From Ophelia neglecta (Eukaryota), in NCBI GenBank assembly GCA_965285935.1, contig OZ260662.1, positions 28,210,001 to 28,274,000 of the forward strand: a DNA stretch of 64,000 bases, given 5' to 3'. The position numbers and the translations under genes are program-made. The stretch's first letter is position 1. Each line of letters opens with the position of its first letter. Below, in pieces: positions 12,458 through 58,083 of this stretch. The notes beneath the pieces are model-generated. The model was not told the origin of the DNA. It did no database searches and worked only from the letters and a program-made list of their open reading frames with translations.

Positions 12458-12493
12458 CCTAGATCAGACTACCGTGTAGACATCTGTAGGGTT

Positions 12494-21880: not shown

Positions 21881-24800
21881 CTATGCCGCCGAGTCCAGGC
21901 CGTGGAGGGCATGACGCCCGATGGTCCCTTTGGATATCACCACCGCACCACGCTTTCTGGGCAACGTGTTAGTTTCGGTGCTTGTCATTGATCCAAACAT
22001 ACCCTGTATGGAATGAAAATATCCCTTGAAAAAAAAAGTCAATTCATCAGTTGGTGTATGAATATGAATTAATAGACAAGTATTTTTAAAAATTAACATT
22101 AATAATTTAACGTTAAGCTCCTGGCAATTCACACGGGAAAATCAAGGATAACCTTGGCCTATATGAATTACTACGTTTTTGTTTCCCTATTAAGAAATTT
22201 AAATTCCACTTTTTATTGCGGAAATACATATGCGTATGCTCCCACACACAAGAAAAGGTTCAAAGTACTCCTATGTGACCCCCCCCCCCCCCCCTGCACA
22301 TATATACACAAGAATACACTGTTGATGTCCCGTGTACCGGCCTATGTCATTGACTATAGATACGAATAGAAGTAGATCTAGCATTCTATCATAATTGCTC
22401 TGAAAAGATTTATATTAAAAAATCACACATAATATCAATTGAAAGAGAACAAAGTAATGAATTCATGATCTTACAAGGAATGAGTTGGGTGGCCTTTCTA
22501 TGGATGGAAGCACATAGACGCTGTCGTATGGGAATTCTCCCACCAGACGAGACTGTTCACAGCGCCCCACCAGCCAATCCTCTCTCACAGGTAGGTTGTT
22601 CTCATCATCGATCAACTCTATCACATCACCCTGCTTGAACTTAAATTCTTTATCACCGGCCACGTGATCTGCAGATTAAAAAAAACGTTTTGATAGAACA
22701 CCCAAAACATTTGAACTAAGCCAACGTTCTTGTAATTACAATGAGTGTTTTTTTTTATATATGTTAACCATCTCCCAATTTAACTGAATTTACTAACTAC
22801 TGAATTTAGCGACAACATTCGGACGTATTCATAATAGTTAGTAAAGATGTAGTTACTCCGAAGCAAGCGTCTCATATACAACGATTTAGAAAACTTAAGA
22901 CAGAAAAATAGCATGTAATAAATAAACTGATTAACTACAGAGCTACTTGTCTTGATTACTACAACAAGATTATTATTTCTCTTCTCAGACCTACCTTGTA
23001 AGATAAACTCTTCGAGCCCGACTGCCCACTTGGAGCGTTTCCTGAGCCCCTCCAGGAAGGTCATCACTAACTTGGCTATCGTCTCCGAGTTGGGACTGAT
23101 GAAGGTGTACTCGTCTCCCTTAATGGTGATGATGCTGAAACTCTGACCTCGCATCTTTCCGGCCCTAATGTAGACAGAATACATTTTGTTGGCTCGTACG
23201 GAAAGCAAATAAATAACGTCCAACTTAATATGGATTTTAAAAATATACGGTAAACTGACGTTGAGCTCGGCTTTCATTTTCGAGTAATACACCGTTTTAA
23301 GATACACCACAACAAATAAGTCAGATTATAGCCTATATAATGTGTATCTGACAGTGGTATACAAACATTGGATATGATATTCAAAGGCGTGTATAAATGT
23401 TCACTGAGTTGGCATGCTCGAGTGTGGACTTAAATGATCGATATTTTAAGTTTTAATTTTTAAGTGTGTTTACTTTGCAAGCGTTGCAGTACGATTTTTG
23501 GAAATAGTACATGACAAACTCAAGATATGTTTGGACACAACTGGTAAAGAAGACAAACCTGCTGCTGAACACCTCGACTACCTCATAGAAGTGGAGGGCC
23601 AGGACCACTTTGTAGGGCTCGTCTAGGACGAAGAAGCCCGAGCTGGACACCGCTATCACCACCTCATTCCGGGGCAGACGTGGACCGGCTATCCTAGATA
23701 ATGAGACACAACACAACGTTGACGCACACCTTCATTAGTGACCAATTGTAGCCAGTATAATATAATATGTAAATATTGCATTTTAAAAGTTCGCCGGTCT
23801 ATCTCTTACGGCGCACTTTTAAAAAGGCAAACCACTATATCATCATGAATATTCACATCATGTACGCTTGTGAAGTCTGTGTTTCATTTTTTAAGGCTAT
23901 ACGAGGAATGCTGTAATAATTTATTTCAAGCATCAACACTAGTGTTCTCTACACATATTTTTATATATACTTGTACCGATAGCAATTTATTATGCAGCCT
24001 TCGCATGAATACAGGTCTGATTAACATTCATTTATGAACTACCTGAACGCCTCGAAGAGACCAGCAAATTGCAGTGGCCATTTCTTTGACGCCGACATGA
24101 CCATGGCCCATTTCACTTTGTCAGCAGACGTTTTCTTCTGAGCGTAGCCGAACTCGTCGTAACAGGCCATGATAGCCTGAGTCCAGCCATCTCGAGACCT
24201 GTTGCCGGTGAGGGCCGACTTGGGCAGGTAGTCGTGGAGGTTGGATTGCAGCTTACCCGGCACGAGGACACTACCCTCTTCAATGTACCACCGCTTGGCA
24301 GCTATCTTGGCCAGTTCATCCTCCTTGAAAACAAAGGCAGACACCATTTCTCGCAAGTTTCCAATTATTATGTTTAAAACAACTTGTGATTATAAGGAAA
24401 ATCCTTAAAAGCTAAAAGAGGCTTTAAAGTCTCCAGTAATACTTGGCAAATTTCAGATTGAAAGATTGGTGAGTTTGATCTTAAAATGATTGCCGTAAGA
24501 CAAGACTGCCACTACATTTCACACAAGTAATGTTCTCGAGACCAAAGTTTGAAAGGGCTTTATATGTATATAGGAAACTTTCCCATTTTCTGACATTTAT
24601 CACATGAAATAATTATACTTGATGGTCACGATTTAAGACAAAGTGTCTAACTTTGATTGTTTGACAACAATTCCAAGTGTGATAAAGTACGGGTGATTGT
24701 GGTGACTGAATGTAGTCCAGTGAGAATCATTAACAAAGCCATGGTACATATTTCATTGAATGGTAACCGAGACCGCCAGCATAATGATTTGTGAAAAGGA

Positions 24801-27800
24801 GAATCGAAACAAAATGATACAGATTTGTTTTATACATTCAGCAACATCAAATACAATATTATTACTGATTTAAATCAATATAATTTTTTGTGACTTTTAT
24901 TCGTTGTTTTCCGTGTAAAAACCTTTGTAAACAAGAAGTTCCATGTAACCTAGTCTATAGTTAAATCGTACCGATTTAGTCCTATATTCTTCTGACCGCA
25001 CGCCTTTAACTAGCTGCTGATATATAAGTTTGGTGGCAACCTCGTCAAAGGAGGGGTCATGCCAGGGGGTGAATAGTTCCTTTCGAAAGAACAGCCGCCA
25101 GGGGGCGTCCTCCTCTTTGGCGCCCTTGGCCCTCACCACTTGTTCGCACTCTGAGATGGCGTCCATGACATGGTCCAGTCCGCTCCCCAGAGACGACACC
25201 TGGAAGACGATAACCGGAAACCAGTGAGAATCAAGTAATTAGAAAAACCAGTAGTACTTATAAAAGACATGTCTACTCTTCAGTATCAGTTTGTTAGAAA
25301 ATCATGTTAATTCTGTATACATAACAGTGGCGGATGTAGGGGAGAGGGGGGGGGGGGGGCTTTGCCAAAAAGTGGGCCTGGACCAGCGCTCATTTCTGGA
25401 CCCGCGCAAGGTGGTTTCAGACGGTTGGTAACAGGGACAATCCAGACATTTGCCTTGTCAACCTTGGAAAGATCCCCCCCCCCCTCCCCCTTCCTGAAAT
25501 CTTGGACCGCCACTGCATAATCATTCACCTAAATGGAAGGTCTTATTTCATTCCTAGACTTGATCAACCTTGGGCTTAATACACTTTTGCATTATATTTC
25601 CTGTCTGTTGCATAGAGTTATCACTTTGCGTTATGTGATTCTTACTATCTATATAGGTACGTTTTTTTCGGTCCAGTACACATTATGGCTTTGCACCCAG
25701 CACACTGCACATGGACATATTTTGTGTTAGTGCCTAATCTCATGACACAGGACTATATTTAATCTCAAATCTAAACTCGTCTTTGTTTTAATGTTACTGT
25801 TCTATAGTGCAGAGCATGTAGGCCTATATCTCAGTTATAGACACAAAACCACAAAGAATGGGAAACCAGACTCAAGACAAGTCCTAACTGGGCTAGTAGA
25901 CCTATACCGTTTTTAATTACAAATCGGTTCTACGGAATAACCTATATATACTACATATATACCCAAATACACAGGCTACAAACAAGAAATTCTTATGGAT
26001 AGGCCTCCATGTAACTATCATTGTAGGCCAACGAGTACATGCAGTTTCAGCCCAAGGATTTCATTTATATTTGAAAAAAGTATGTACTCTTTTAATTTAA
26101 ACATGCAGCTATACTCCTTCAGTCCGTTTTAAAAATGCCTTTAATAGGTTTTTCTGAGCTTGTGGCACTTAGCAGGTTTGAATTTGTTTTCTTGAAATGC
26201 ATTTTTGGCATCAGTCACATTTCTTATTGTTTGCTAAATGTTATAAAGGCTCATATTAATTGATTATCGGAATGGTTTTAACTCTGACCCAGTTTCCTAT
26301 TTTTTTGATATTGGTTGCGCTTTACCTTGTCGTATATACAAATGTATATTGAGAAGCCGAACGTGTCTTTGAGACCGCGCATGGTGGCAAGTTTGTGGCA
26401 CATATCTGAGGCTGTGGTGGCCGAGTCTGCCTCAACCGACTCGACTTGACCGTCCGCGAACGCTACGGGTAACATCACATACTTCCTCATCTTAGTCGCC
26501 TGAAAAAGTCAATATTTACTCCAAAATTATTATGGCATATAAAAATATGTGGTTGGTCCGATTGAACAACATTTGACAATACAATCAGCAAGAATTATAC
26601 TCGAGAATTGAAAGATTTCTCGTTGATGAATGTTTACCTCTAAAACTTGTTTGTATATCAATTTAATTACAGATTCGGAAACTTTGCAACTTCATCGTAG
26701 CATGTAAATGGTCTATTATTCTGTAAATTTATTGAAAAAACTAGGGGGGGGGGGAGGGGGCGATTGCTATTATCAATTATGGGTAAACCTCAATTCCGAG
26801 TACTTGTGTAGCTTTCCAGTAACGTTAAGGGGTACCAACGCTCCTTTTGGTGAATTTGGACAGACGTTAACATTAAGCCTCGATCAATAGACCAGGATTT
26901 TTTCTGTCCTGTATCTTTGTCCGTTTCTTTCGAAACATGTAACAGCGCCCTCTACCACCTCACCTGATACTCCAGCCAGTTCGGTGGGTGATATCGCATT
27001 CCGTTACCCGACGTTCTCCGCAGTATCCTTCTTGTATAAATGGCATAATCTCGATAGTCGACAGGAGCGTCTTTTAAAAAGCACTTTAGGTACTTTGACA
27101 GCTGGTCGGTAGGTAGATAGCACCCGGCACAGAGGGCGAGCAACATCCAACCCCGAGAACAGCTCTCTGGGTTGGGGTTCTTTTGTACCTGTTTACAAAT
27201 CTGACAAAATATTTCGTCCCTGGAATAGAAAAGGTAACGTTTACAGATATGGTTTGTAGTTCAATGACTCATTCAATGTTGGACCTTATCTCAGCACACT
27301 ATAAGTTCTTTCACAAGAAACAAAACTAACGTTATCTGTGAAACTGTATGCTACCCAATTTTTAGGCCAATTAAATGACCTTACATGATAAATAATATAG
27401 TTTGTTGCAGGGACGATTCAACAAAGGAACAGACAGTCAATGCATAGAAAGCCCAAAAGGAACACATTTTTTCATGTTTCAATATTGAATGTTTCTTTAC
27501 TAATCAGGTTCATCATTATTATGAGTTCGGAAGAAATATGTAAATACAAAACTGACCGTAAGTCTCGTCGTAATATACCATGTCCAACGATATAGTGAAT
27601 TATATCCATTTCCCTACAGGGTACTCCGTTTGCTACTTCCGAAGGGTTATTACTGTAATCTAAATATGTGCCATTTTTGCCACCAGATGTCGTAGTAGTG
27701 ATACTACTATGATGTTGTAAATCATCATTCTTTTCTTTGTTTTTGTCTTTACCACTCTTGAATATTTTCTTCCAAGATTTTCTTTTTTCTACTTTGAATG

Positions 27801-30800
27801 GCACAAATTCTTTCTCTCCCTGAATTATAATTGAGACATTGTAAAGCTTGTTTTGTCGCCTAAAACATCAATAATTAAAACTAGTTTTGGTAGTATTGAT
27901 TGACTTATGAGAAACGAACATTCTTTAAACATATTTAGAAATCTGTATGTATATTAGTTATAATGGTTAACGTGTGTATCTATCCTTATACCTGGCCGTT
28001 GGCTGACCCAGCTGGTTGCTCCGTACCAGTACTACTATCACTACCCTGCCTGCTCCGCCGTTTTGAATAAGCCTCCAGTGCTCTGTAGATTTTTGTCATC
28101 ATGGGGGTTTTGTCCTGAAAACGAATTGGGCAGTAAAACTCAATATTCATAAATTCTAGCTATTTCTTCCACTTAAATGTTTAGGCCTAACATGCATTTC
28201 GCAAAGCATCCCACATTTATCTATAGATCTATGCTGGCCTATTATTACTAAAATGCCCTTTAAATTAAAACAGTTGAGAGCTCAAACAAAAGGGCCTATC
28301 AACACGTTTACCAAACTTACTAACGTTACGTGAGAGAGGAACCATTACCCTCGAAGACACACAAACCTCTACTATGTAGTTTTCTGAGCTAAATACCATC
28401 AACGATAATACCTAGCCTTCTTTTAAGAAAAAGACTATATCATACCCTAGGCCCGGAGTCTGTGGGGGTGGGGATGTCTCCCATAAACCTTTGTACAGCA
28501 ATCCATACAGCCAAGGCTGCCTACAAAACAACAGGTTGGTGGTATGCATTGAAAACCTATCAGGGTTTTAAACTTGCTGTCATGTTCGTTATTTAAATTA
28601 ATGATTATAATACGACGGGTTTTAGCGGTTGGTTCGATATAAAGGAATTTCAGTCAATTACTGTTCACATCAACATAAATATTATTATAAATAAATCACT
28701 GACTTTTCCTTACCCACAATTAAGTTCAACATCTTACCTTTCGGTCAACATCTTGTTTTTTTGGAATCAATGGCTCTCGCAAAGGGTCTTTACTAAACAG
28801 AAATGTCTGTCCGTTACTGAAATTATTTTTACAAAATCTAGAAAGTTTAAACTGTCGTAGTGTGGCCTCTATTTCTTTCTCTGGCATTAATTCCAGCTCG
28901 TCTATTTCGTTGATTGCCTCTTCCCCGTGCAAGCCTATACTGGCCTTAAACTTCTCAGTCAGGCCCTCTTCATCCTCCTAAAATACGGAATGTGTACGTA
29001 ACTACTTTTTGAAAAAGGAACGAATAAATGTTTTACCAATATTGTTTAATATGAAATATACTAGTATAGGATGTATTAAAATGTAGGCAAATTTAAGTAT
29101 AAACAATTATCTTCAGAGGGTAATCAAACAGGTTTAGGACGTTCAGATACTTCCAATATATCATTGCCTTTCAATTACAAGGACAACCATAATGAGCCAA
29201 ATACATTTGTATTTCCCTCAGGTCACACGCCAAGTTGATGATTCAAGTTCAAAATGTACATAGCTTTTCAAACTATATTTACAATAACAAAGTCCAATGA
29301 AGGGCCTATTAATAGTAAATTCTACTTGTTAACCAAGATATCTTTGAGAAACATTTTTTCTTAATCATACCTACCGCGAGGAGGCCAAGTTTAACTCGGA
29401 AATCAGCATTAAGAGCGTCATCACTGTCCTGAAAAGAACCCAGTCTCTTTGTTTATGATTTTCTTCAAATCAATAATCTTTTATTTATGTCCAATACGCA
29501 ATTATAATGGCTTCCGTTTGCCAAAAAGGGCAAAAACAAGCATATTGGTACATATTTGTTGGCAGCGTTCCCAAGACTAAGCAAATGGAAAGGTGAAGCA
29601 AAGAGACGCATTTATTAATGTTGTAGGAGCGATGTTTTATATTATTTCATATTGGTCAACATATTGAAGAACGGCCAACATGGGTAAGCGACTTGCCAAA
29701 TAATAAGAGGGGTGTGGTCTTGTGACTGTTCAGGTAAGCCAACACTGACAACCACGAGAAGGTACTCGCGGTTTTGAAGAGGGCGTGTTCGCAGAATGCA
29801 GGAATCATTCGTTCTTCTATTGAAATGTCGTGTATGATTTGAAATCACCAGACTGACAGAATTTCTAAAGTGCGACAGGCATGAGTTTACTTTAAGCAAA
29901 TCAATCAAGTTTCAATAAGTGTACATAGTACATTATGACATTTAATCTAATTTCGGTTCCTCAGTAACACAGCCTTTTTAAATAGTTTCAATACATGCAT
30001 ATTATGGGTTTAACTCTTAAAAGACCACAAAAGAGGACAGAATTGCATTTTGTAAACAAATGTACTCATTTGCATTTTGAATTGGCATCTTTAAAGCAAG
30101 CTAAAGAACCGCTTGACATAAACAGAAAAACATCCGACATAGAAAAAAACTGAGGTATTGGCATGCATAATATCAGGCTTGAGTCGACTTATTTTGATCT
30201 TTGCAAACTGTGTTCGACGCTCGGATGATCGCTGTCATCGTTTAAAAATTATTAAACTAAGTTTGACACGTCAACAAATATGACATTATATTATTATATT
30301 CATTGTGCATTCCGACTGTGAAGTCGCTCATCTATCAGTACTAGTTGGCTAAACACGTACAATGTGACACGTTCAAGAAAAGAAATAAAATTGTGGGTGA
30401 ATCATTCATATGATTTTTCCTGTTCGCTGGGTGATTTTACCAAGGCAAGTCGACTTGGTGCCACCCTTTTAATGTGTAGCGGGCAAAAATATCATATCAT
30501 GTCTGGTAGTGATTTTGGTTTGACATTGATATGTATATAGAAATCATTAAACTGACGAGGATGCAATAATCAAAACAATTATCAACCAATCGCGGACAAG
30601 TACACGTATATGTGCCATGTTTGTTTAAACTGGTTAAGAGAATAAGACCAGGAAGGAGCAGGTTAAAATTATAATATAAATATACATTAACTGATGCATC
30701 ATTATTGTAATTATATCATTAAATGACTTATATACTACTAGAACGCATTCATTGTTAAACTTAATATAAATTATGTAAGATTGCCGACTGACACAATGTA

Positions 30801-32206
30801 CTCCAAATGTGCTTTTATAACATAGTTTTTTAAACCATTACACTTAGTGTTAAGTAGGAAATGAAAGTCTGGGATCATGGAGTTACAAAATAAGTCGTTG
30901 TGAATATAGAGGAGGTTAGAGCCAGACACACACACACATACACACACAACCCAGACTTAGAACATTAGGTCGTCTATTATCACTCACGTTTTCCGTTTTA
31001 ATCTGAATTTTTTTAGGGGGCACCTGTTCAACATAAAATACATAGTATATTATATAATACACATAATATTGCGTGGTCATCCCTGTAAAAAAAAGCCGGT
31101 GAATGCAATTTAATGCCCCAGTAACCAGCACAGTATCCATTTTTGCGCCAATGTGATAAACTTTCAATTTGTTTTCTTCTTCACGTGTTCACGTGTCTGT
31201 CATTCAGCTGGCCTTAAATATTAACAATAAAGCCACGACCCATTTAAATACCACTTAGACTGCGTGTGTAGATACGGTTCATTTATATTTACCCCAGTCT
31301 ACATCCCTTCTTTCATACTAAGCATTAAGCTGTATTTTCCAGGGTACTTGAATACGAATTCCAATGTCTATATTATTTTTGATAGAACCATAATTGAATG
31401 TGAAGTGAATTAAGTTTATTTGGTGTTACTTAATACATCACATCAATATTTACAAGGGAGCAATGAATATATAAATTAAGAGTAAGCATAAATATGTCTA
31501 TAGTAGCTCATGGCGTGATCCTAAATACGTTATAAAATGTCTAAAAATTATTGAGAATGATTCATCTAGATAGCCAAAGGTGGGATTCTCCTGGTGGAGG
31601 AGACAGTGGCCAGGTACTGATAATGTAACGTGAATAAATAAATCTCAGTTCAACACGTGACGTAATTTGAAAATGTGCAAGCGAGGAATTCAGGATTAAT
31701 GAAATGTAAACACAAAATATGATCATCAGATACGGGAAGCCAAGTTCCAGGCAGGGAGGGAGGCACCCCTAGTGAACACGAAAGCATCCTTAAATGGTCG
31801 CACCCTATATCGTCATGATCGTCTGGTTGGCTGGACACGCCTTGTCTAACCAGAGTATTATTTCTACAGGCTAAAACGTTGTCGAAACTTAAGAAATGTG
31901 GCTAATAATAGAAAGGAAATAGTTGAGGGAAAAGCAAACAAGCAAGTTTAAAGTCTTACAAGGGCAAAATTATAAATGATTGATTGCGTCAATGCACTTG
32001 GGTTTGTACTGAGGCACGCTGTTTTAAAAGACACACGTATTTCGGTATGTTCAGCTAGACGCAGGCATGTAGTTTACTATCACGCTAGTATGTATTTAAA
32101 CAGATACCATATTAGATGCCATATTAGAGCTTACCTCCAAACCGAAATGGAACACACCAGATTCTTCGGAACTGTTCGAGACACTGTCGGGGCAGGCTTC
32201 CGCCAT
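21881..32206 (-). CDS. Myosin-VIIa-tail-like MyTH4-FERM-SH3 protein A (about 795 aa), apparently motor-less
   Basis: 14 GT-AG coding exons in continuous frame (minus): 32135-32206, 29375-29428, 28738-28977, 28446-28520, 27992-28114, 27557-27819, 26964-27219, 26326-26499, 24972-25199, 24043-24323, 23559-23693, 22995-23164, 22475-22668, 21881-22003. Motifs [105 protein letters not shown] and the SH3 segments [26 protein letters not shown] match the recalled first MyTH4-FERM-SH3 of MYO7A. The first two exons are supported only by splice signals and phase. Confidence 0.9.
25325..25515. mobile_element. MITE, copy 1 of a dispersed family (CAGTGGCGG termini)
   Basis: TIR CAGTGGCGG...CCGCCACTG with CATAA on both flanks; collinear with and highly similar to 57902-58083. 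Confidence 0.8.
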
Positions 32207-32580
32207 TGTATGGATGAATTGTTACCGACACTTGACTGAGGGCCTATAACTTCATTTCGATAAAAATATCCCTAGGAAATTGTAATTATTCCGGCATCTC
32301 TTTAAGAACACACACTCACATACATACACACACAACCTTCATGTATATTTGGTTTTCTTCATGCTTTGCTTCACACATGCTTCGTCAATGGTTTGGAATG
32401 CCTGTCAATGGGGCTGACATACAAACTGCAGTCTTCAGCAAGGTGCAGTGTGATTTGGAAATGTTGTAGCTTGTCTAAGAAATAACAGTTACATCTTGTC
32501 GATTTTAGCCTCCGATGTCCACAATGATATTTGAACTATCCGTTCTGAAAACCCTACAACTCCCCTCCCTATAGTCTTAC

Positions 32581-32715
32581 GGGTCTAACCATACGTGTCT
32601 GTCCTAGGTAGAAGGCCTTTTCATGTGTTGATTGATAAATCTCGGGTAGTTTAGTTGTAGTCGTGATCGGGCACCTCCATTTATAGGCCTACTTGTTGCA
32701 CTGACGACGTGATTG
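32581..32715 (-). promoter_or_regulatory. Candidate TATA promoter and non-coding first exon of gene A
   Basis: TATAAAT at 32685-32679 (minus), donor GTAAGA at 32580, and acceptor TAG at 32244-32246 leading into the ATG exon. Confidence 0.4.
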
Positions 32716-41700: not shown

Positions 41701-44641
41701 AGCTCAGTCGACATCTCCCTGGTCTATCGTAGTCTTCTCTTCTAGTCTTGTGCCTGGTCTGCTAAGAACAATGACTACAACTGGTGGATGAGATTTCATT
41801 CTTTTGTCTCCTCGTCGTATATTTTGGAGTGGAACTGCTCTCAACTTTGTTGCTTAGTCGATCTCAGGTGTCCCGAAAATGGTTTAAGGCTATCCTTTTG
41901 GGTTCCATATCAAAGTTGAAGCCCATACTGGCAGTCCTTGGGTCGCATTGTGCCTCGTTCGGCCATGTCTGCAGACATGATATTTTCTGTCTACAATACT
42001 TTGGGATGAACGTCCTTAGTTTATTAAAATAGCTCAGTTTTCTTTTACTCTCTCTTGTCGGGCTAGGAAACGTTATACCTTGAAATTGACATTTTTGGTG
42101 TATTTGGCTCTGGACCAAGTCAGATATGAAGTGACATCCCTTGTTTAATATGTGACCTTTAATATAACAGGTCAAATCAATAACTCATATTCACAGCTTT
42201 TGTCTGAAATCAATGATAACTTCTATCGGATTCCATTGGTCATGTAGGTAAAATCATCGCAAGGCATGCAAATCATAGAATTGAATGTTTAAAATAAGAG
42301 CAAGTTATGAACGAACATTTTTGGACTACACAGATAGAATATATAGTCAGTAGCCTGGTGGTAAACAAACAATGACATTCCTAAACAAATATCTGAAATA
42401 GTTGCTGAAATCACTAGAACAATCGAAATACCAAGACAAAAGTTCATCAATAGCAGAATACATAAACTTGCTCATACTATAATGAGCTACTATTTCCCGC
42501 AGATCTGATCAGGGGGGTTATATATGCATCACCTTAACGTCTCGTAAATTGTAGAACTATTTCGGGCTCGAAGTACGACAAAATGAAAAAATAATACCAG
42601 CAGTTAATATAAAACTATTGACAATGAATGATAGATTGCTTTGTTTTTATTGCTATCATCATCTTTTCGCAACCTGAACGAACGATGTTTTTGTATAAGA
42701 ACTTTGTTTTAGCCCTAAAACAACTAATTTAGGCTGCCTCCCAGATATATCTGTAACATAGGCCGTTTAGTTTAAGCCTTACTGTGTTTCATACATCGTT
42801 GATAAGGATTCAAGGGAGTAAAATAATTTCGAAAACAAAATGCATTAATGAACGAGTTTTTGAGCTCGATGCTATCACCATAATGCGTGCGTGTGGTGCT
42901 AGGTACATCTTCATTCACACGTACAAGGAAAGTTTGCGTGATATTTCCTACTTTGACGGTTGCCAACATTTAACATTGCGGTCCAGGGAAGTTTTGCCCA
43001 TTTGGCAACCTTCCGTTAAGTTAGCTTTCTTATGGTCTTCGTTTAAATGGGATGTTTGTCAAAAATTACCAGTAGAACCGGCCTTACTTGAATCACCGTG
43101 CGTGACAAAAATAATATTCTCGTTAGTGTGGCCTGCCGTCGCTCGGTTGCGCGAAGCCCGAGACAGTTTGTGTTAGGACAGTGCCTGGACTATTTTGAAT
43201 CTTCCACCCCACTGGGACGTTTTTTTCACTGCGGGCTTCATGAACCATGGCGATGACCACCATGATTATAAATAATATCAAAAAGCATGTGAAAGGAGCA
43301 CAATACTATTTTTGTCATCTTGTAAGAAAACATTAATTTAGTTATGAATAATGTCGACCAATGTGACTCAAGCACCGATGAAAGTCAACCTGTGTATTGT
43401 GCAGTGGGCATGTATACTTCTTATCATAGGCCTATCATAATGGGCCTATAGGCCTACCATACATGGAAAGCAACGAACCATCTCGTCTCAGGCGTTTCTT
43501 AGAAATCTTATCCAGTTACGATTAAGAAAGGAAAGCCAAACAAATATTTATCTATCTTTTGCCAAATTATAGAAGTCAGATCATTTCGTACATAAATTAA
43601 ATCTTGCCAAATTTGAATGGCGTCTCTGTCATAATCATTGGTACACTACTTTGGTTTTACATGTTTATTAGTGAGTGTTCTATATTAGAATGAATATTTA
43701 TGATCTATAGTCTGCATTCTTTTCATAATTCTAAAGAGGTTTCTATTTCTAGCTATCTTGTGAATCGTAATTGGGAGAGTGCACTTATCTGGTCGAATGT
43801 ACTTGTAAATTTTCTGAATGAAGCAGTTGACAGTTTTTTTTTCTGATGTGTCGAGCGCCATGATTGGTTCCCACGTAGGCTTAGTATGACTCGCCAATTT
43901 TAGTCGACAGTTAATACGAACCAATCAAACGTTTTATTGTCCTCGTTTCCTTACGTCCTGTGGTACATTATTTTTTATCTGTATTCAGCCGTTTGTGTGG
44001 TATCTAAATCAGATCACCATATTATGTCAATCAGCAAAACACGGACAAAACTGCATGAGAAATTACGTGTCTGCCGCAACCGCGCAACCAGCGACTTGTG
44101 AAAGCTGGTAATTGTACGGCACGCTAGGGTCAGGACCTAACTCTATCCCATCATCTCTTCTGTTATTACGTATATTCGGCAAGAGAAAGTTTTAAACTCC
44201 TATTTCCTTCGCAACATACTGTCCCTTTAGAAAAGAGACAGAGGGGGTTTCGGGTCAATGCATTAACATTTCCTTTACTAATAGGGGAGTAAGTTCCGTC
44301 ACACAATCAAATCGGCCGATGCGCAAATTTTTCATCCAACCCCAGCCGCCGTGTTTCCACGCTTGTAATAAGTCCGCCAGCTGCAACGTCGCTGGAAGTG
44401 CATTTCTCTGCGGACTGTCATATTTTTATAAGTTGATGGCAGCCAATATAGAGGGACGGCACTTTTTTGAAAGCACGATTCGTACAAGAAGGTAGCCTTC
44501 AAATAGGACTTGACCTGGTCTAAAGGCCCTAGTTGCCGCGCGATTCGGCTTCACGAGGGAACGTGTGCGACAGGCCTTAGTTCAGTGGAAACAAAACAAG
44601 GAGTTCCTTCACCACCGTAATTAGTGGTGAATTGAATCAAA

Positions 44642-47600
44642 ATGCCTACTGAAGACAGGAGACGGCGGAAGGAGGTTATACCTCTCAGCACCCTCTTTCA
44701 GAAGGTAGGAATTTAGCGATTGAAATGTTCCAAGTCATTTTATCGAATGGCAAGCGTGTCATATAAATGAAAATACAAGTATATGGCGTTTACGAGGGCG
44801 TTATCAGTGAGAAGTACACCCTAGAGTTCTGGGGAGAATACATTGTTATAAATGGGCTGTTACTGTAGTGTGGCAAAGAAATCGATCACATTACAAAGTG
44901 GACTTAAGAGGTTTAGATATATACTATCAAGTTAACGTGTGTTTTCACTGGCAAAGTGTAATGATAGGTTGTAATCATGTAATGGAAGAGGCGTCCTCTG
45001 AGGTACTTCTATTCGCAATAAATTCTGTGCTTAATGTCCCGTGATTCCTTAAAAATCTGTATTCACATCAAAAAGATAAAGGACTAGACACGTCCACTAG
45101 GTTACGTACTATGTGGTCAAGAAAATGTCCTAAGCCCATTGACAAAACAAGTTGGCACGAGGTTTATGGTGTAATGTTATAATAATGACAACATTGCCGA
45201 AGCCCGGTAGTGTTTTATACCTATATATATCTGTGTGTGTGTGTTTTATAACCTAAAATCAACGTTCATAAGCGTGACATAACTTAAGTCGTTTGAGGAG
45301 TTGTAGGAGCTTGTAAGTGCGGTTCTCACGAGACGGGGAGTTTTGTTTGATAGTCATGTCGTCTGCAGTTGATGAACCCAGCATCGTGCACATGTGGGAA
45401 ACAATTAAACATTTCATATGTAGGTCTAGATGCGCCGAGCGTGTGAGACAATTTCCCGTCTACCCTTACAAAGATGCTGGTAGGCCTGCAGGTGTTAAAG
45501 TCACTTGATCTCAATTGAAGCTACAATATTTACGATATTGGTATGAAGGTTTTTTCCCCAAAAGCCTACAGCATGGAGCATTAACTATATTTTGTTACCA
45601 TGTGATCATTGAAACTAGTTGTACGACAAAATTGCAGCACACGGAGCGATTCTCTGAAGCTCGAGCCAAGGACCCAGAAGAGACGATGCCGATTTCCTTT
45701 CGAAAGAAATCCCAAAGCTCTCGCGATGATAAGAATGAAGAGATGCCCGGAGACGATGGGAGTGGACTGGGTATCTCCAATCTCGCCAAGATCTACTTCC
45801 AAACCGCAGCACCACCCTCCTACAGTCGAAAAGAGATCCGGCACCCGCTGTTAAAAGGGACTCAGGAATCTGACAAACAGGTAGGTTTACGTCCAAACTA
45901 ACTTACACCAAACGACTAAACCACAAAGAGATGACAAACAAACAAGCTATGTTGGAGTTGGGAGGCGTAGGTGTGTAACAAACACGACAAGGACTTGTTC
46001 ATTAACAGCTGCGGAAACGGGTCTTAGTGCAGCCGTTGTTTAAGGAAGACAAAAACAGTATCGTCTGTTTTTAAAATCTTTCCTCACGACGCGCTGTAAT
46101 GATCCTGAGACATTCTAGATGTGGTGTTCTAAACGTTGACACGCATGTCTAAATTAGGCTTTGTGCAATCCGGTTCGTTACCTTTATTTGCGACATGCAA
46201 TTATGTAGTGAAAAAGTTAGTTCCTTCGACCTCCCGAAAAGGTTAAACATTTTTGCCTTCTGTCATTCAGTGTGTAATTACAACTTCCATGCAAGTTGCC
46301 CGACTGTGGCAAAGACTTATTAGATGAAGCTACAGCAAGTCCCATCAGGCAGCCATTATTTACTTGATATACCCGGTGTAACAGTTTTAGGAGTCCCCTG
46401 GTCGGACCCCCCCCCCCCCCCCCCCGGACTACATACCCCAACCCAAACCCGGGAGTCCCCGTATATAGTATTCTAAGTCCGCCGGTCTAGAATTTATAGT
46501 ATATTTATGATCCGATCTTTAAATCCTATAGTAAAATACGTCCGCCGGTCCTAAAATACTGGCATATTTCATCCCAGGTTCTTATTACCCTAAGATTTTA
46601 GATTTTGTATAGGGGGGAGGGGGGGGGGGGGGTTTCAGTCGAGGGACCAATTAATGTTTATACATGAATTAGGCCCTTTATATAAAAGTAATAATTAACC
46701 TTAAACTCTTTGCTGTGTGTAGGCTCATTTTTTTGTCACCCTGAATGCAGTCACATGTACCACCATTGGAAATAGGCATGAAAGTATTTTCTATGTCCTT
46801 ATTGATATGCCTTATTTACTGCATAGAATTTTCCAAAGAAAAATGATTGAAAATGACTTCAAATGAAACATATAAGTATGACCGTAACGTTCAATGGCTA
46901 CCTGTAATGGCCTTATCATTCATATAATAGGTGAATGTTGACCAATCAGCGTGTTTCCTAGGTTAATAAACACTGTTAGTACCCCTCATGTTATCAATAT
47001 TGCAACAAACACCATTGTGGGTCCTGTCACTTTTCACCCGAATTAACCTTTTCGTTTATAACCATATCTATATTACCTTTGGTAATGTTCCGTTATTATT
47101 TTGAACTATATGCCGTTCAGGCCGAAGTTTAACCCCTGACTGTGTTGGCCTGTAGATTGTGGTGCAATGGTACGACAAACCCCGAGACTACGGGGCGCCT
47201 ATTTAGATATAGGATATCTATCATTTTACACAAGTTAAAATACAGATAGATTTATAACACGCATAGTCTCATTTTTAGATCTTGGCTTCGGTAAACAGTT
47301 TATCAATAATGCATGATTACGTTTCGATGAACAACACATTGTCTCTGCCATCGCATTGTCTTTACCACTTGTGAGATTGTCACATGAATTATTATTTAAA
47401 GGTGGCACTGAACATCAACAAAGTCATTTTAAAGTTCATGGGTGATTCTACGGACTACAGAGTGAATCAGACCAACCCCAACACTCAATCGGTATGTCAA
47501 TTACCTCCGTCTGTAATCATAATTACATCAGTAATAATAATAATCATAATAATAATCATAGTGTGTGACTGTTGACAATTATACAGCTACATGTTCTATT

Positions 47601-50600
47601 TTCAGTATAAATGTCCAACAGTACCATCTTATATATTATACATGCTTCAACTTTTTTTCTTTACACATCGTGCATGTGCATAAAGAATGTATTTAGTTTT
47701 GTTCATTGACTTCTTGGGCAGCATTAGTTTTTTCCGCATAAACAGTTCTTGCAGGTGGGGGTTGGACATAAGATTGTTTGTATGGGCCTGTTCTCTCAAT
47801 TAAAGAAGGCCTTTATTTATCGCGATAGAAAAAAACAATAAAAAAAGCCGCCATTTTGGATTTTTTCAAATCTGCCAGAACATAAAACCAATTGATAGAT
47901 GTTTCAGACAAACGGAGTGAACTTTACTGACCGCATTCCGAAGGTGTAACAATATAAAAGAAGTTGATTGGCACATCTGAAATTGTGATTTTTTGCATCC
48001 TTTTCATGTAGAATCTCGGGCCAGTGATGACTCGGCTATATCTGCAGCTGAGTGCTGGGTCTAGAGCCAATAAGTTGAGGTTAATGCCAAACATCGAGGA
48101 AGAACTGGTAAGTGTGAAGCCTGTGACTTAAATAGGATATAAAAAATGGCGGCACCTACCATGAGGCATTCTGGACGTAAGCCTATAAACAAGCAGCGAA
48201 ACGCCTGACCGTATTTGTGTTCATGTTTAGTACGGAATAACCAGAATTTTAACGCATCTTCTCTGCAAATACAAATCTGGGAATATTTATTGCACCTTTA
48301 TCAGCCCTTTTTGGCATGCTTCTCTATTTGACAACATCTCTGTCAGTCTATTTCACTTGTTAAACAAGTAACATAGGCTATAGACGCACACAGAATTCCT
48401 ATACACCAATACCAATTTACCTGCCGATAAATGACGTATTGCCTGAATAAAAAAGTTTTTAAATCCGCCCCCCCCCTCCCCCACTTTTTAACTGTTGTTT
48501 TCATAATGCTTGTGACAATGCTATTGCTGTCTTAATGTCACATGTACACCCCTCGATTATAGAATGAAGGGGAAGCTCCCACCAAAAAGCCCTCCAAGCC
48601 TCCGAGGGGAACTCTTCGCCGTCTTAGAGCGACTCTACATTCCAGGATGGGGCTGTTTCCTGAACAAGTCGCTGAATTTAATGAACAACCCATGGAAGGC
48701 ACCTTGGCGACGCCACTCGATCAAATTCACTATATCACAGGAAACGGTATACTGAGAACAAAACTCAGGTAGGGGAGCAGTGAAATAGGGGCAACATTTC
48801 TTAACAGTTGAAACTCAGTTAGACTGGTAAAGGTAGATAGAATACATGAAGACCTTTATTTCTGAATGATTTGTTTTAAAATGAGTCTCTAAGCATAACG
48901 GGTCATGCACAGGGGTCATGTGAAGTGAATAAAACAATAGGTCCCCAAGGTATATTTTGTCTAAAAACTGACTTAGAACAATCAAGAAAATAGCCAAATT
49001 GAACCACTAAATAGCCAATTTACGACTAATTTATCTCATCGTCACCGCATTTGGTATTAATTATTGAAATATAGCCTGGTGACCCTTTTATACCTCAAGT
49101 AATGATTAAGCGGCATCGTTAAATTATTTTTGTCAATTATGAACACAATTCGACAATTAAAAATTATTTCAGAAATACTTTTACTTAAATAGAGGGTCTA
49201 GAATGGCTTATTTGGGGTAACGACCCGTGAAAATCGCCCTATAAGGACTCATTTCAAAAAAAAAATTTCCCAATAAAAGTCTTCATATATTCTGTCTACC
49301 TTTAGAAGGCCAACTAAGTTTCAACTGTCCTAAATTTTTGCCCTTATTTCATGAAAACATTGTGAACTACTCCCTTTAAATACCCTTGTTTTTGGTGCTG
49401 TTCATGTAATAATTGAAAGTAGAGGCTTTCCTATATCCATATAGCGTCACCGTATCAGTTGACTTTTCAGAGATGAGATATACTGCCAGATCATCAAGCA
49501 GTTGATCGACAACTCCAACAAGTCGGGGCTGTCCCGGGGATGGCTTCTCTTGGCCCTGGTGGCCGGCTCCTTCGTGCCCTCCCCCGAGGTAGGCAGAAAC
49601 CCTTTCCAGACTTAGTCATCCAAATACATACTTAGACTGGAGGCATATTTTACTTGTTACCAAAAAAAACTATACTTTTAATTCTTTTCTAATATACAGT
49701 GAAACCTGACAACAAGGGACTACCAAGGGACTGGGAAATCTGTCCTCTTTTCTCAGTTTTCCTTTTTTCACAGGTTACTTTACATGCAAAGTATTACAAC
49801 TGTACTAAAAACAATGTCCTTAATAGTCAGTGTGTCCACAATTGCCAGGTGTCCTTTAGACCAGGTTTTACTGGAATTTTTATGAGATGTGACCGTAACT
49901 TTAGCTATATAGTTGCAATATGCTTCCATGCACCCGACAAAATATTGGATAGCTTGTGTGCATGACTACAACTAATCAAGTTTTGTCGGTGAAACGACGT
50001 TTTTGCACTTGAAGAATTCTGTCGAACTCTCGCTCAGTTCAGTTCATTTCGATGTTTATAGTCCATTAATATAGAAATTACTATAGGTTAGCGGTTAATA
50101 GTCACCCTTGACCGTTAAACTTCGATATCCCTCGACATCAGTAAACCACAGGAGAAACTTTTAGTGCTTAAAAGACAATAAACCCCGTTTGGTCTGCCAC
50201 ATAACTTTTTATGGTTATGTCGTGCATTATAAAGGATTTTATTTTTCCGTTGATAAACGGCCTGTTCTAACAAAAGTGGTGATTTTTGCGTTGTTTTGTC
50301 ATCCTCTCGACTTCAATGTACCATGATCAGCTTGGTAATGGTATTAGGAAATTACCTTTCACAGATATTTCCATACGTCATGCATTTTGTGAAGGAAGGC
50401 CCCGCCTACTACGCAACGAGTCTTCCGAAGCTTCTTGAACGAACGCAGAAAAACGGGACCAGATTCCAACCACCTGCATACATAGAACTAGAGGTTGTTT
50501 ACTAATTTGGCTATCCAACATAACAAATTATTTAAGGTGAAATAAACAATTGTTTAAACCTTTAAAGGTTTAAACCTTTGAGCTTGTATTCTTGTTCAAT

Positions 50601-53600
50601 TTTTTATATGCCAACCAGCTGCGTCCTGTGTCAAAATTGTGCTTCGTTGTAATTTCTATAATTTACCTGAACACAGGCAGCCCTACTGAAGAAGCCCGTG
50701 GAATTGACCGTGACCCTAATGGACGGGACTGACCACGCAGTGGCCATAGATTCGGCGATGACCTCCAAGGAACTATGTGAGAAACTCAGTCGTCTGATCG
50801 TCCTACATCAACATCAGGGCTTCGCAGTCTACATGGCATTTAACAACAAGATAGCCTCGCTCGGAGCTGGCTCCGACCACGTGCTCGACTCCGTCTCTCA
50901 GTGTGAGCAGACGTTCAGGGAGCAGGAGGGCGAGGGCAAGGAGGCGTATGCCAACTGGCGTCTCTTCTTCCGGAAGGAAGTGATTATACCGTGGGAGGAT
51001 GCGCAGGACGACTATGTCGCAATTAACCTGATATTCGCCCAGGTTGTGCGTGGTATAATCCTTGGAGAATTTTTGTGCGATACGGTCAGTTCACATATAA
51101 TGATCTCCTCCGTCAAAAAAAGACAACAGATAACTTATTTAATGTTTAGGATATAAACAATACTCCATGCAAAAGCCGATATTTCCTAAATAGACCATCT
51201 CTTCATTAGTGCACCTTTTGTTCATCATCCTTAACTATATATTTTGCAGGACACCGAGTTAGCTCTGGTGGCTGCCCAGCAGTACTATATCGAGTACGGC
51301 GGTAAAATCAGCGAGGAAGCGCTTCAGGCCGTGCTACCGTCCTATGTCCCCCCTGATAAACGAGAGAGTTCCCAGACCAACGATCCCCTGAAATACTGGC
51401 GAAAACTGGTCATTAAAATCTACAATAAGCTGTATGGAAGCAAAGACGACCAAGATCGACCTGACACACAACGGGTCAAGCTGGACATCGTTCGCTTTGC
51501 TAAGGGCAAGTGGCAACAAGAGTTTTCCCGCTTCTATGAGGCTACCAGGCTGGAGGGACCTACCTGGAACGACAATAACGTGATGGTAGGAGTGAGCGGT
51601 GGCGGTTTGGTCGTCATGTCAGCGGAAATGGTCAAACTCATGGATTTCACATACGCCGAGATATATCAGATCTCTGGGGAAAAGTTAGTCAACGCAAAGT
51701 TTTTTTTTAGCTGAAAGAATTAAAGGAAAACGCTTCTATCAAATCAATAGAATCCTTTAATCTTTTGAAAACCAGCAATCACGCCAAAGATGTTTGGCCT
51801 AGAAGTTCTCCCTGTTTAACAGAAATGAGTGTTTTTTTCTATTTGACGTGTTTCTGTTCTAACTTCAGAGAGACAGACGATGCCCCTGCCCACGTGGTCA
51901 CCTTCTTGTTGGCCACTGGCAAGCTCCTCAAGTTGGAGAGTGTGGATGCGGAGGAGATTCTACGGTCAGTGACCACTATGTTAGAGGGGCTGAGACAGAG
52001 ATCCCGCTGGGCCGTAGCCAGGCAAGATTACAGAGGTAACTAAAAAACCCCAAACCTTGTGTCTATTTTGTTCGCCATTTTCAAAGACTATTTACGATAG
52101 CTTCTTATTACTATTGATGTGTCCCTCTGCTGTGGGTACAATTCAGGAATTATTCTTGTCCGATGAGTTGCTTTCGAAGTCGGCATCTTAGAAGTTAGGT
52201 GATTCGTCCCGACTTCTTGATGGTGGTTTGTAATAAGGTCATATTTCATAAAAGAACAAAATCAAACAAACACCCGATAGCAGAGGCCCACTAGAGGTGT
52301 GCTTCCCCAGATGGAGTGTTGCCAAGTGCCATGGTGCATACCAGTAACCATAATGTTTGCGGATTGTGTTTCAATAACAAATATCGTGAGCCCGGCGGTA
52401 ACCTGATCAATGCATATATATCAGTCACTCCGAACAGGTCAAACCACAAACCAGCTGACTTTGTTGCGTGGGTGTGTGTGTGTGATGGGGGGTAAGGGGT
52501 GTTGGGTGGGGTGGGGGGACACAAACCTAGTATAGGCCCATTCTGTTCCGTACATCATTTACTGGGAAGCCAATGAATTTAAATGGTATCCTTCCCTTTC
52601 ACGACATTAACAGATTACTAATAAGGCCTACGGAGAGAACTCAGTTATGTGAATTATCGGGAGAAGTTATGCGTCGGTGTGTTTGTTGGATTTAGGGGGG
52701 GGGGGGGGGCGGCGGCAGGATCACACAGTAAGAAATGTCATCGCTTGTCCACAGGACAGGTAGCCATCACTGGCCATTTGCCAATTTTTTTTGTGACTGA
52801 AGATAGTGAAAGAAGCATTCCACAAGTGTTCAGGGATGCCCTAGCCCTCGAAATATATTTGAAGGGGCTCAAGACAGAAGCTTGAAAATTACTCTTTTTC
52901 AATGGCAAACCAAAATCATTTGCCTGGCCAAATCTCTTACATGTAAGAACAAATCGGAACCCCCCCCCCCCCTTGGGGTCCAGAACATGACCCCAAGCCT
53001 GTACCGGTGTGATTTAAAACCAGTTGCTTGCATTGCGCGGCTTGTGGCGTGCGGAGTGATTAAGAGCTAGAGCAGTATAATTTAGACAGGAAGAAGAGAA
53101 AGTGGGCTATCATTTTAAGGAGGTATCTGTGATTCGTGGCAGGTAACCCGATGCACGAGCCGGGGGTTGTAATGTCTGGTAAGGGGGGAGGGAGGGGGGG
53201 GGGGCTTCTGGCGCAAAACACCTTTTAGCCTGGATGTCTATACTATTTGCCCCTCCCCCTCAAAAAATGACAATGAACTTGCCTAAGCCGATTAAACCTG
53301 GTGGGAATTTTGATATCTGGGCCATATATTTTTAAATAGGCCTATACAGGCTTATGTACTACTAATAAGAAAGAATATCAAACCTTACATATCGGTATAT
53401 ATTTGGTTAATCTAAAATTTGGTACTGTTTTCTTAGGTAAATCAGCGGAGGAATTGACATTTAAAGAAGGAGATTTGGTGGTGCTTCAGCAGCGCGCCCG
53501 TGAAGCCGCCCTCACCGAACCTTTCTGCAAGGCACAGAACAAGAGGACCGGGCAGTTCGGTGAACTGGCCACAGACAAACTCTTCATAGTACCAACTGTG

Positions 53601-54354
53601 ACAGAGCCAGGAGAAGACACATTGGTAAAACCGTACAACTTATTCATTTGCAGACTGACATCTTGCACGATTCTTTACATTCCGCACGCCAAAAATAAAT
53701 AAAATGATATCTGACAAGCTTTAATGATTATTCTATATATATTTTCTACAGAAACTCTTCCGGAACAAGGCCAAGCGTTTGACAGTTCCTCCACCTGACA
53801 TGCTGATAGGAACCATAATCAGCTTGAACAAAGGCGACGAGGTGAGATCAAAATACGAGTGGAAGGACAACGCTTTGGCCCAGGTGCCCGGGGAGAAAGC
53901 GGGCGTTAAGGTGGACCTTCGTCCTGCTCCGGTACAACCACCGCCGTCCACTCAAACCAATGGAGAGTCCAACGACTTTGGAACTCGAGACACTGATTCT
54001 GGCCATGGATCAAGTGTCAGGGAGTCGGATACTCCGAATGTATCTTTGATTATTGACGACGAACAAGTCACAAAATATGAGAAAAATAACCTCAAACCAA
54101 ATGAGAACGAGAATAAACAGTCGGTCTATCAACGCCACGACCGTTCTCCTGCCACTCACATTGTTAATGGCCGCAAAACCGGAAGTACTGACATAATTAG
54201 CACAAATACGGACAATTACGTAACAATCGAGGACGAAACAACAACTACGGAAATAACTGACGATCTTTCAGAAAACCACACGCATCAGGACAAAATAGTC
54301 TCCAATGGTCACGTGCCGGAACTGACCGTGGTCCACTTTGATATAGCTCTCTGA
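44642..54354 (+). CDS. Myosin-VIIa-tail-like MyTH4-FERM-SH3 protein B (about 914 aa) with a long disordered C-terminus, apparently motor-less
   Basis: 12 GT-AG coding exons in continuous frame: 44642-44704, 45638-45880, 47402-47491, 48012-48107, 48563-48768, 49471-49588, 50365-50493, 50677-51084, 51250-51683, 51869-52035, 53437-53624, 53752-54354. Motifs [104 protein letters not shown] and [11 protein letters not shown] match the recalled myosin VII tail. The first exon and the 45637 acceptor (weak pyrimidine tract) are less certain. Confidence 0.9.
48771..49376. mobile_element. Long-TIR (foldback-like) non-autonomous element filling intron 5 of gene B
   Basis: Imperfect inverted arms of more than 100 bp (ACAGTTGAAACT.AGTT...TAAAGGTAGA.AGAATA.ATGAAGAC.TTTATT...AAATGAGTC on both arms), with termini AGGGGAG...CTCCCT. 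Confidence 0.7.
49697..49873. mobile_element. Tigger/pogo-like MITE
   Basis: TA-CAGTGAAACCTG ... CAGGTTTTACTG termini and GTCC/GGAC internal repeats; the 3' TA is not preserved. Confidence 0.65.
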
Positions 54355-54570
54355 ATTGTTCTTTGTTTTGAGCTGACTGTAAAATGATGCGAGTAAATTC
54401 GTGCTCCTTCGCTTAAGTGCCATATTTTCTTGTTTGCTTTGATTGTTAATTCCAGTACAATATGGTCGAAAAAATTGAAGCTTTGTCCTGTTTGTTTCTG
54501 TTCGTTTTATTTGTTATTTCTTTCCGAGGCTGCAATTTTTCAGTATTGTAGGGTTGTTAAATTTTGCCAT

Positions 54571-57901: not shown

Positions 57902-58083
57902 CAGTGACGGATTCAGGGGGAAAGGGGGCCCGTGCCTAAAAGTGGACATGGACCAGAGCCATTTTCTGGACCCTCGCAAGGTGGTTCCAGAGGGTTGGTA
58001 ACGGGGACAATGCAGACATTTGCCTTGTCAGCCTTGGAAAATTTGCCCCCCTTCCCCTTCCTGAAATCCTGCATCCGCCACTG
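57902..58083. mobile_element. MITE, copy 2 of the same family
   Basis: TIR CAGTGACGGAT...ATCCGCCACTG; internal sequence shared with 25325-25515 (GGTTGGTAAC.GGGACAAT.CAGACATTTGCCTTGTCA.CCTTGGAAA). Confidence 0.8.

Follow-up and report, generated by a model that had tools for sequence, protein, structure and literature searches.

To what extent class VII myosins work as transporters and to what extent as static anchors in stereocilia, microvilli, and photoreceptors is a recurring question. The MyTH4-FERM cassette is also found outside the myosins, in PLEKHH1/2/3 (MAX-1). Among the closest systems described so far, headless Myo10 of vertebrates is a MyTH4-FERM myosin product that has no motor but still has its cargo-binding tail (PMC6345916, PMC5725431), and plant KCBP is a MyTH4-FERM protein without a myosin motor (PMC4574192). 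In the vertebrate complexes, the second MyTH4-FERM module of myosin VII (MF2) binds harmonin, and SANS binds both the first module (MF1) and harmonin (PMC5493754). Here we analyzed a stretch of 64,000 nucleotides of Ophelia neglecta (referred to below as the window), corresponding to C2:28210001-28274000 of a 762 Mb assembly, in which two genes, A and B, encode the MF1-SH3 part of a class VII myosin tail and nothing of the motor, the neck, or MF2. We consider with a probability of about 0.7 that A and B are real, selectively maintained motor-less genes, each belonging to a conserved family of its own, and that their products would most likely be non-motor adaptors or scaffolds.

Gene models were built exon by exon from splice sites and guide proteins, and Pfam was run on single exons; the database searches were carried out with single exons of A and B or with the proteins of their relatives, the joined models being compared locally only. 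Gene A is encoded on the minus strand in 13 exons, whose 2331 coding nt specify 776 amino acids (aa), from an ATG at 32206 to a stop codon ending at 21884. Gene B is encoded on the plus strand in 12 exons with 2715 coding nt for 904 aa (ATG at 44642, stop codon ending at 54354), so that the two genes point away from each other. Both frames are unbroken, an in-frame stop codon lies ahead of each ATG (TAA 6 codons upstream in A, TGA 3 codons upstream in B), and all the introns are of the GT-AG type (23/23). The exons of the two genes match the same Pfam domains, namely MyTH4, RA_2 (FERM F1), FERM_C1_MyoVII (F3), and, weakly, SH3; no further domain was found in any of them, and PH and kinesin domains matched none. 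Gene A begins 17 residues ahead of the pre-MF1 motif, and both genes end one exon past SH3.

In the whole-genome Pfam scan, MyTH4 was detected in the window at 26964-27221 (-), with an E-value of 2.5e-25, and at 49466-49591 (+), with an E-value of 5.1e-11, and there were two further matches at C2:84.34 Mb. Since these two adjoin a full set of motor exons identified by the Myosin_head scan at C2:84350212-84353776, the genome holds a canonical, full-length class VII myosin (C2:84.33-84.35 Mb), which is located 56 Mb from the window (A and B lie at 28.23-28.26 Mb). Every open frame of at least 20 codons on the minus strand of this locus (84325001-84365000) was used as a tblastn query against 184 kb, made up of the window and the 60 kb flanking it on either side. 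The only pieces with specific matches were those of 84341704-84345433, which encode MF1 and SH3; they matched with 30-70% identity in two ordered series, one running from 28887 to 22472 on the minus strand and the other from 45725 to 53660 on the plus strand. Neither the motor pieces nor the neck pieces (84345618-84349199; IQ lever arm/SAH) had a single match in these 184 kb, and MF2 had no specific match there, its pieces giving weaker cross-matches to the MyTH4 and F1 exons of A and B. The Myosin_head scan found nothing in the window, and the spacer between the two start codons showed no match to any myosin VII piece and no Pfam domain in its longest open frames. An earlier note, written from the letters of the window, had described two intact multi-exon paralogs on opposite strands, starting at 32206 and 44642, with a large-insert MyTH4, FERM, and SH3 followed by a stop, with no motor or IQ exons between them and no second MyTH4-FERM after either; the rebuilt models, the per-exon domains, the comparison with the canonical gene, and the genome scans all agree with this description.

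A and B are 32.5% identical over 668 aligned residues, while A is 46.6% and B 41.2% identical to the tail of the canonical myosin VII of the same genome. Because of the low identity between A and B, an assembly duplicate can be ruled out. Most of the intron positions are common to A, B, and the canonical gene, which rules out retrocopies and indicates that A and B arose by duplication at the DNA level. The exon layout of A is that of the canonical gene plus one extra intron in F2/F3, whereas in B one F1/F2 intron has been lost and one intron has been gained in the MyTH4 core.

The structural comparisons likewise point to the first module of myosin VII. The A-type orthologue P0164 matched the MF1-SH3 structures of Myo7a with SANS (3PVL, E 1.5e-142) and of Myo7b with ANKS4B (5F3Y, E 1.4e-118), the MF2 and Myo10 structures being matched with E-values of 1e-23 or weaker, and 3PVL and 5F3Y were also the best structure matches of single exons of A and B. 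The AlphaFold model of another A-type protein, P0168 (mean pLDDT 77, pTM 0.74), has its confident part between residues 90 (approximately) and 745 and gave target-normalised TM scores of 0.89-0.90 to 3PVL and 5F3Y, vs 0.64-0.70 to the MF2 structures. Its first 87 and last 23 residues have low confidence, the pLDDT of the last 23 being below 50, as expected of a linear motif.

A profile-free search with exon 8 of B over 1.84 billion representatives retrieved many myosin VII tails and no close relative. When the matches were scored against A, B, and the canonical MF1-SH3, the Helobdella robusta protein HELRODRAFT_190655 (771 aa) and one Logan protein were found to be nearer to A than to myosin VII, and HELRODRAFT_194873 (960 aa) was nearer to B. 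Searching with the A-like leech protein returned, ahead of ordinary myosin VII, a block of proteins of 548-859 aa with MyTH4, RA_2, and FERM_C1_MyoVII as their sole domains, including Capitella teleta CAPTEDRAFT_175577, a Ridgeia piscesae protein (NP493), and several proteins on contigs of 2.3-3.1 kb. In the case of B, the full Helobdella 194873 sequence gave nothing useful, its low-complexity N-terminus having likely supplied the search words; its residues 231-830 led to P0305 (876 aa), which shows 44% identity to B over 665 residues vs 38% to the canonical myosin VII. This transcript-like contig protein and Helobdella 194873 are the known B-type proteins. Orthologues were thus found for both genes: A shows 59.6% identity to the Capitella protein and 44.8% to that of Helobdella, while the B-type orthologues share 39-44% of their residues with B. 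All the named members of the two families are annelid proteins, which also points to an annelid as the source of the window.

Three of the orthologous contigs, L017 (ERR7672905, 848 aa), L021 (ERR10172503, 772 aa), and L019 (SRR19644540, 876 aa), carry intron-free, uninterrupted open reading frames (ORFs) spanning most of their 2.6-3.2 kb, with in-frame stops shortly ahead of the ATG; the orthologous contigs finish with a stop codon and untranslated sequence. These three contigs appear to be mRNA assemblies, and since the stops closely precede the ATG in all three, the motor-less form would be the complete product. The N-terminal part of A can be aligned with the short N-termini of its family, with which it shares the motif F-R-H-x-L-G-x-x-P-E-E ... 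L-T-E-x-F-K; in A, this motif runs from exon 1 into exon 2. In Helobdella, the A-type gene is flanked by a kinase gene, its upstream neighbour, and a RIG-I-like helicase gene, and no myosin-head gene adjoins either the A-type or the B-type gene. The two Helobdella genes are on separate scaffolds, which means that the divergent arrangement of A and B is not conserved.

Two quick IQ-TREE trees (LG+C20 PMSF), computed from 58 and 43 rows of about 657 columns and rooted with the MF2 domains, agree with one FastTree tree. The A-type rows form one clade (SH-aLRT 100, FastTree 1.0), in which gene A stands among the Capitella, Ridgeia, and Helobdella proteins, and a second clade (SH-aLRT 99-100, FastTree 1.0) unites B with P0305 and the leech B-like protein, so that both families are fully supported. 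The canonical gene joins the mollusc myosin VII proteins (SH-aLRT 97-99, FastTree 0.987), and the A-type and B-type clades both fall outside the canonical lophotrochozoan myosin VII clade, in a backbone that the three trees do not resolve. Given the membership of these clades, both families are older than the split of the annelids sampled. Their stem branches measure 0.5-0.8, vs 0.07 for the terminal branch of the canonical myosin VII.

The same trees contain a separate clade (SH-aLRT 100) consisting of P0034 (Lottia 213603), P0268 (Aplysia 'myosin-VIIa'), P0093, P0051, P0054, and P0026. Its named members are molluscs, its proteins are MF1-SH3-MF2 models of 1017-1320 aa without a motor, and it is distinct from the canonical mollusc myosin VII; these proteins may represent a third lineage without a motor, or the predictions may be incomplete. 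A search with P0093 found no specific counterpart of this clade in the present genome. In Drosophila (the P0100 cluster, myosin-VIIa), NCBI predicts for D. rhopaloa and D. suzukii, in addition to the protein of 2122 aa, 1073-aa products named 'isoform X2/X4', a hint that a fly class VII myosin may have headless isoforms.

The A-type proteins have a tail of their own, TLPRKRGxVV..TIGRH..HG[IL][DQ]S[AS][AI] followed by the stop, which is conserved across the family. It ends in SAA, SAI, SSA, TSA, or SLI in A and in 8 of the 9 A-type proteins whose tails are complete; P0166 ends in TFI, which also fits the S/T-x-hydrophobic pattern, and P0194 in IGL, which does not. The end of the A-type tail thus fits the pattern of a putative class I PDZ ligand (S/T-x-hydrophobic-COOH). 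The tails of B and P0305 are both about 200 residues long and have no Pfam domain; that of P0305 ends in ...YFEEHL, and the leech B-type model ends differently.

In both families, the motor, the IQ/SAH neck, and MF2 would appear to have been replaced, by a conserved tail of about 40 residues ending like a class I PDZ ligand in the A-type and by a long domain-less tail in the B-type. Such proteins would be unable to move on actin; their MyTH4-FERM-SH3 platform would most likely bind one set of partners while the new tail links it to another scaffold, which in the case of the A-type may be a PDZ protein. Under this hypothesis, MF1-SH3 combined with a PDZ ligand could in principle bridge partners of the harmonin/SANS type without a motor.

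Since A and B retain the MF1-SH3 fold to which SANS and ANKS4B bind in vertebrates (PMC5493754), they might instead be natural dominant-negatives that compete with full-length myosin VII for an adaptor of this type, as proposed for headless Myo10. We consider this rather unlikely in view of the residues that line the binding pocket. In human Myo7b, the substitutions A1128E-R1129E-K1192E abolish the binding of SANS and ANKS4B, whereas K1194E-K1195E-R1171E-R1172E leave it in place (Yu et al., PMC5493754). The mapping of the pocket columns was validated on a bird Myo7b row, in which the seven columns read A, R, R, R, K, K, K. Among the 13 canonical myosin VII rows (vertebrates, arthropods, molluscs, and the canonical gene of this genome), the A-R pair is present in 11, the exceptions being I-K and A-K, and the K1192 position is K or R in all 13. 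Gene A carries S, R, K, which is close to the canonical A-R...K, and gene B carries S, R, L. However, the A-R pair is replaced throughout the A-type family (by LK, KL, KQ, DR, QK, KK, SS, HR, LR, VN or KK, and SR in gene A); K1192 is mostly retained there and is L, W, or E in the three B-type proteins. A three-residue insertion in this MyTH4 region is common to the A-type proteins. The CEN2 pocket, nearly fixed in canonical myosin VII, thus appears to be free to vary in both families, at the very positions mutated in human Myo7b, which argues against a simple competition for the same acidic CEN2 segment.

That A, B, or both are the 3' parts of longer transcripts with distant motor exons, or are joined to a motor through an assembly error, is very improbable. 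The search for sequencing runs gave no RNA run of this species, and Myosin_head exons are present on the plus strand upstream of B, the matches nearest to the window on the chromosome being about 800 kb away (27385819-27406534). However, neither motor nor neck exons were found within 60 kb on either side, and in the divergent orientation the upstream exons of each gene would have to lie past the other gene. Stop codons precede the ATG in the orthologous contigs, a kinase gene is located upstream of the A-type gene of Helobdella, the N-terminus of A aligns with those of its family, and DNA contigs from three runs span most of the second half of B. Equally improbable is the view that one or both genes are unexpressed relics, i.e., young pseudogenes with frames still open by chance: both evolve faster than canonical myosin VII, as their stem branches indicate, and their expression is predicted only, but 776 and 904 codons are open across 13 and 12 exons, A and B are conserved relative to their annelid orthologues at the identities given above, the family tail is conserved, the coding variants of B are mostly synonymous, and no listed indel is exonic.

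The variants in question come from DNA contigs of three runs of one sample, which cover most of 48400-54399 and differ at allelic sites. The listing for this stretch comprises 40 of the 76 substitutions and 12 of the 23 indels and is indicative only; 10 of the listed substitutions fall in B exons, 6 being synonymous and 4 non-synonymous (V to I and N to D in FERM, P to T and T to N in the tail), and all 12 listed indels are intronic, although coding sequence makes up 37.6% of the stretch. As an indication, this pattern looks like purifying selection on B.

Some points weigh against regarding A and B as maintained genes with an adaptor role. Exon 1 of B is predicted and tentative, with no counterpart in the B-type orthologue P0305; the RNA rather than DNA origin of the short Logan contigs is deduced from their intron-free ORFs alone; the PDZ-ligand reading is drawn from a sequence pattern; the counts of variants in B come from a partial listing; and the run search for the species returned three runs, all DNA-like and from a single sample, with no RNA run among them. 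Nevertheless, the view that these are dedicated motor-less genes, and not pseudogenes or gene fragments, is supported, because orthologues exist, the 5' ends of the orthologous contigs are closed, the Helobdella genes have no adjoining myosin-head gene, and B shows the pattern of polymorphism described above. The interpretation given in the earlier note has therefore held as far as dedicated headless genes are concerned, and its argument against pseudogenes has been strengthened by the conserved orthologues and the variants in B added to the open frames, while its suggestion of competition for cargo has been weakened by the lack of conservation of the CEN2 pocket. It had also expected annotation to misname such genes, and the databases do call the proteins of the two families 'hypothetical protein', 'SH3 domain-containing protein', or 'myosin-7'.

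The exons of both genes are listed in Table 1.

Table 1. Exons of genes A and B and the spacer between them, with positions in the window ("canonical", the myosin VII gene of the same genome)
Feature	Position	Strand	Content and matches
A exon 1	32135..32206	-	Start codon and first half of the conserved A-type N-terminal motif; donor GTAAGC
A exon 2	28738..28977	-	Second half of the N-terminal motif and first MyTH4 helix; splice TAG|..|GTAAGA; tblastn matches to canonical, P0164, and P0165
A exon 3	28446..28520	-	MyTH4 N-terminal helix; 68% identity to canonical over 22 aa
A exon 4	27992..28114	-	Start of MyTH4 insert; frame continuous, GT-AG borders; similar segment in canonical and in the Ridgeia protein
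A exon 5	27557..27819	-	Low-complexity MyTH4 insert, then entry into MyTH4 core
A exon 6	26964..27219	-	MyTH4 core; Pfam MyTH4 E 2.5e-28
A exon 7	26326..26499	-	First part of FERM F1; Pfam RA_2 E 2.9e-15
A exon 8	24972..25199	-	End of F1 and start of F2; 70% identity to canonical; PDB 3PVL E 1e-31
A exon 9	24043..24323	-	FERM F2
A exon 10	23559..23693	-	First part of FERM F3; Pfam FERM_C1_MyoVII E 3.2e-9; preceding intron missing from canonical
A exon 11	22995..23164	-	Second part of FERM F3; Pfam FERM_C1_MyoVII E 1.5e-11
A exon 12	22475..22668	-	SH3; Pfam SH3_1 E 1.8e-4, slightly under the curated cut-off; 37% identity to canonical SH3 exon
A exon 13	21884..22003	-	Family-specific 39-aa tail ending ...DSAA, then stop codon; 51-69% identity to the C-termini of Capitella P0170, P0164, P0165, P0167, and P0168
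Spacer between start codons	32207..44641		12.4 kb
B exon 1 (tentative)	44642..44704	+	Start codon; donor GTAGGA
B exon 2	45638..45880	+	N-terminal leader and first MyTH4 helix; alternative Met inside
B exon 3	47402..47461	+	MyTH4 N-terminal helix; segment also in P0305
B exon 4	48012..48107	+	Start of MyTH4 insert
B exon 5	48563..48768	+	MyTH4 insert, then entry into MyTH4 core
B exon 6	49471..49588	+	First half of MyTH4 core; Pfam MyTH4 E 1.7e-14; next intron B-specific
B exon 7	50365..50493	+	Second half of MyTH4 core; 50% identity to canonical
B exon 8	50677..51084	+	FERM F1 and start of F2; Pfam RA_2 E 1.4e-25; PDB 3PVL E 9.1e-39; two exons in A and in canonical
B exon 9	51250..51683	+	FERM F2 and first half of F3; Pfam FERM_C1_MyoVII E 6.2e-9; 37% identity to canonical over 147 aa
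B exon 10	51869..52035	+	Second part of FERM F3
B exon 11	53437..53624	+	SH3; weak Pfam SH3_9; 33% identity to canonical SH3 exon
B exon 12	53752..54354	+	200-aa low-complexity tail ending ...HFDIAL, then stop codon

Other features were observed in and around the two genes. In one haplotype, a 24-nt insertion is present at position 48769, the donor of exon 5 of B, where the GT is retained as aligned. In intron 6 of B, at 49600-49999, the summed contig depth of the DNA runs rises from about 24 to 44,000-116,000 over 400 bases, with many loose contig ends at 49723-49879, which marks a dispersed repeat with a very high copy number. A direct repeat of 137 nt, with 83% identity between its copies, is located at 25345-25481, in intron 7 of A, and at 57915-58051; the first copy contains a C/G run, which gives the poly-Pro and poly-Gly ORF fragments observed across the window. 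An open frame of 432 codons at 12458-13753 (+) has a C-terminal SOCS box (Pfam E 7.4e-8); a SOCS-box gene probably lies upstream of the pair, with this frame as its final or sole coding exon.

Elsewhere in the genome, MyTH4 and FERM pieces showing 24-47% identity to the A-type or mollusc tails are present at C12:39166931-39172023 (+) and C12:28648731-28650879 (+), and no Myosin_head match on C12 is closer than 20.98 Mb to these two loci, which could be genes of the PLEKHH type or additional motor-less relatives. A single uninterrupted open frame of 1908 codons contains a complete myosin head at C8:42860759-42862801 (+), which covers all 679 profile positions (E 4.4e-298); this locus resembles a myosin heavy chain gene without introns and may be a retrocopy.

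If A and B are indeed maintained motor-less genes, the MF1-SH3 platform has been kept in the form of stand-alone genes in all the annelid lineages sampled, which provides a scaffold-only form that can be compared with the motor in the same animal. On a more speculative level, and with the odds well against it, annelids might possess two old, dedicated motor-less descendants of myosin VII, in which short linear motifs have taken the place of the motor and of the harmonin-binding MF2, namely a PDZ ligand in the A-type and a long tail in the B-type. In microvilli or sensory cilia, these would build motor-independent adhesion complexes of the Usher type, from cadherin to actin. If true, this would amount to a natural experiment in which what myosin VII does as a scaffold is separated from what it does as a motor. 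As regards annotation, filing these proteins as hypothetical or as 'myosin-7' inflates the counts of myosins and hides a family with N- and C-terminal motifs of its own.

The literature searches on headless or motor-less MyTH4-FERM proteins and on the accessions of the orthologues returned only work on headless Myo10, plant KCBP, and ordinary myosin VII. As the earlier note had supposed, the A-type and B-type families are therefore undescribed in the literature searched, and their members are known only as automatic predictions. This is the case of the closest counterparts of the two genes: HELRODRAFT_190655, CAPTEDRAFT_175577, and the Ridgeia NP493 protein are of the A-type and HELRODRAFT_194873 is of the B-type, with similar domain contents and tails, and these four are predicted as 'hypothetical protein' or 'SH3/FERM domain-containing protein', two of them being truncated at the N-terminus. 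Like the class VII myosins (Myo7a, Myo7b, and Drosophila crinkled), A and B have a MyTH4 with a large insert, F1-F3, and SH3 in this order; unlike them, they have no motor, IQ/SAH neck, or MF2, they occupy separate loci, they carry new tails, and their CEN2 residues are not conserved. Headless Myo10 is made from the Myo10 gene itself, as an alternative product that retains the whole tail, whereas A and B are genes in their own right that have conserved orthologues and retain only the first half of the tail; an origin from an internal promoter of a motor gene, as in Myo10, does not fit a canonical gene located 56 Mb away and genes with orthologues of their own. PLEKHH/MAX-1 and KCBP have PH domains or a kinesin motor and no SH3 past FERM, whereas A and B show no PH or kinesin match and possess the SH3. 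In their structure matches, the A-type and B-type sequences group with the MF1 of myosin VII and not with the other MyTH4-FERM cassettes.

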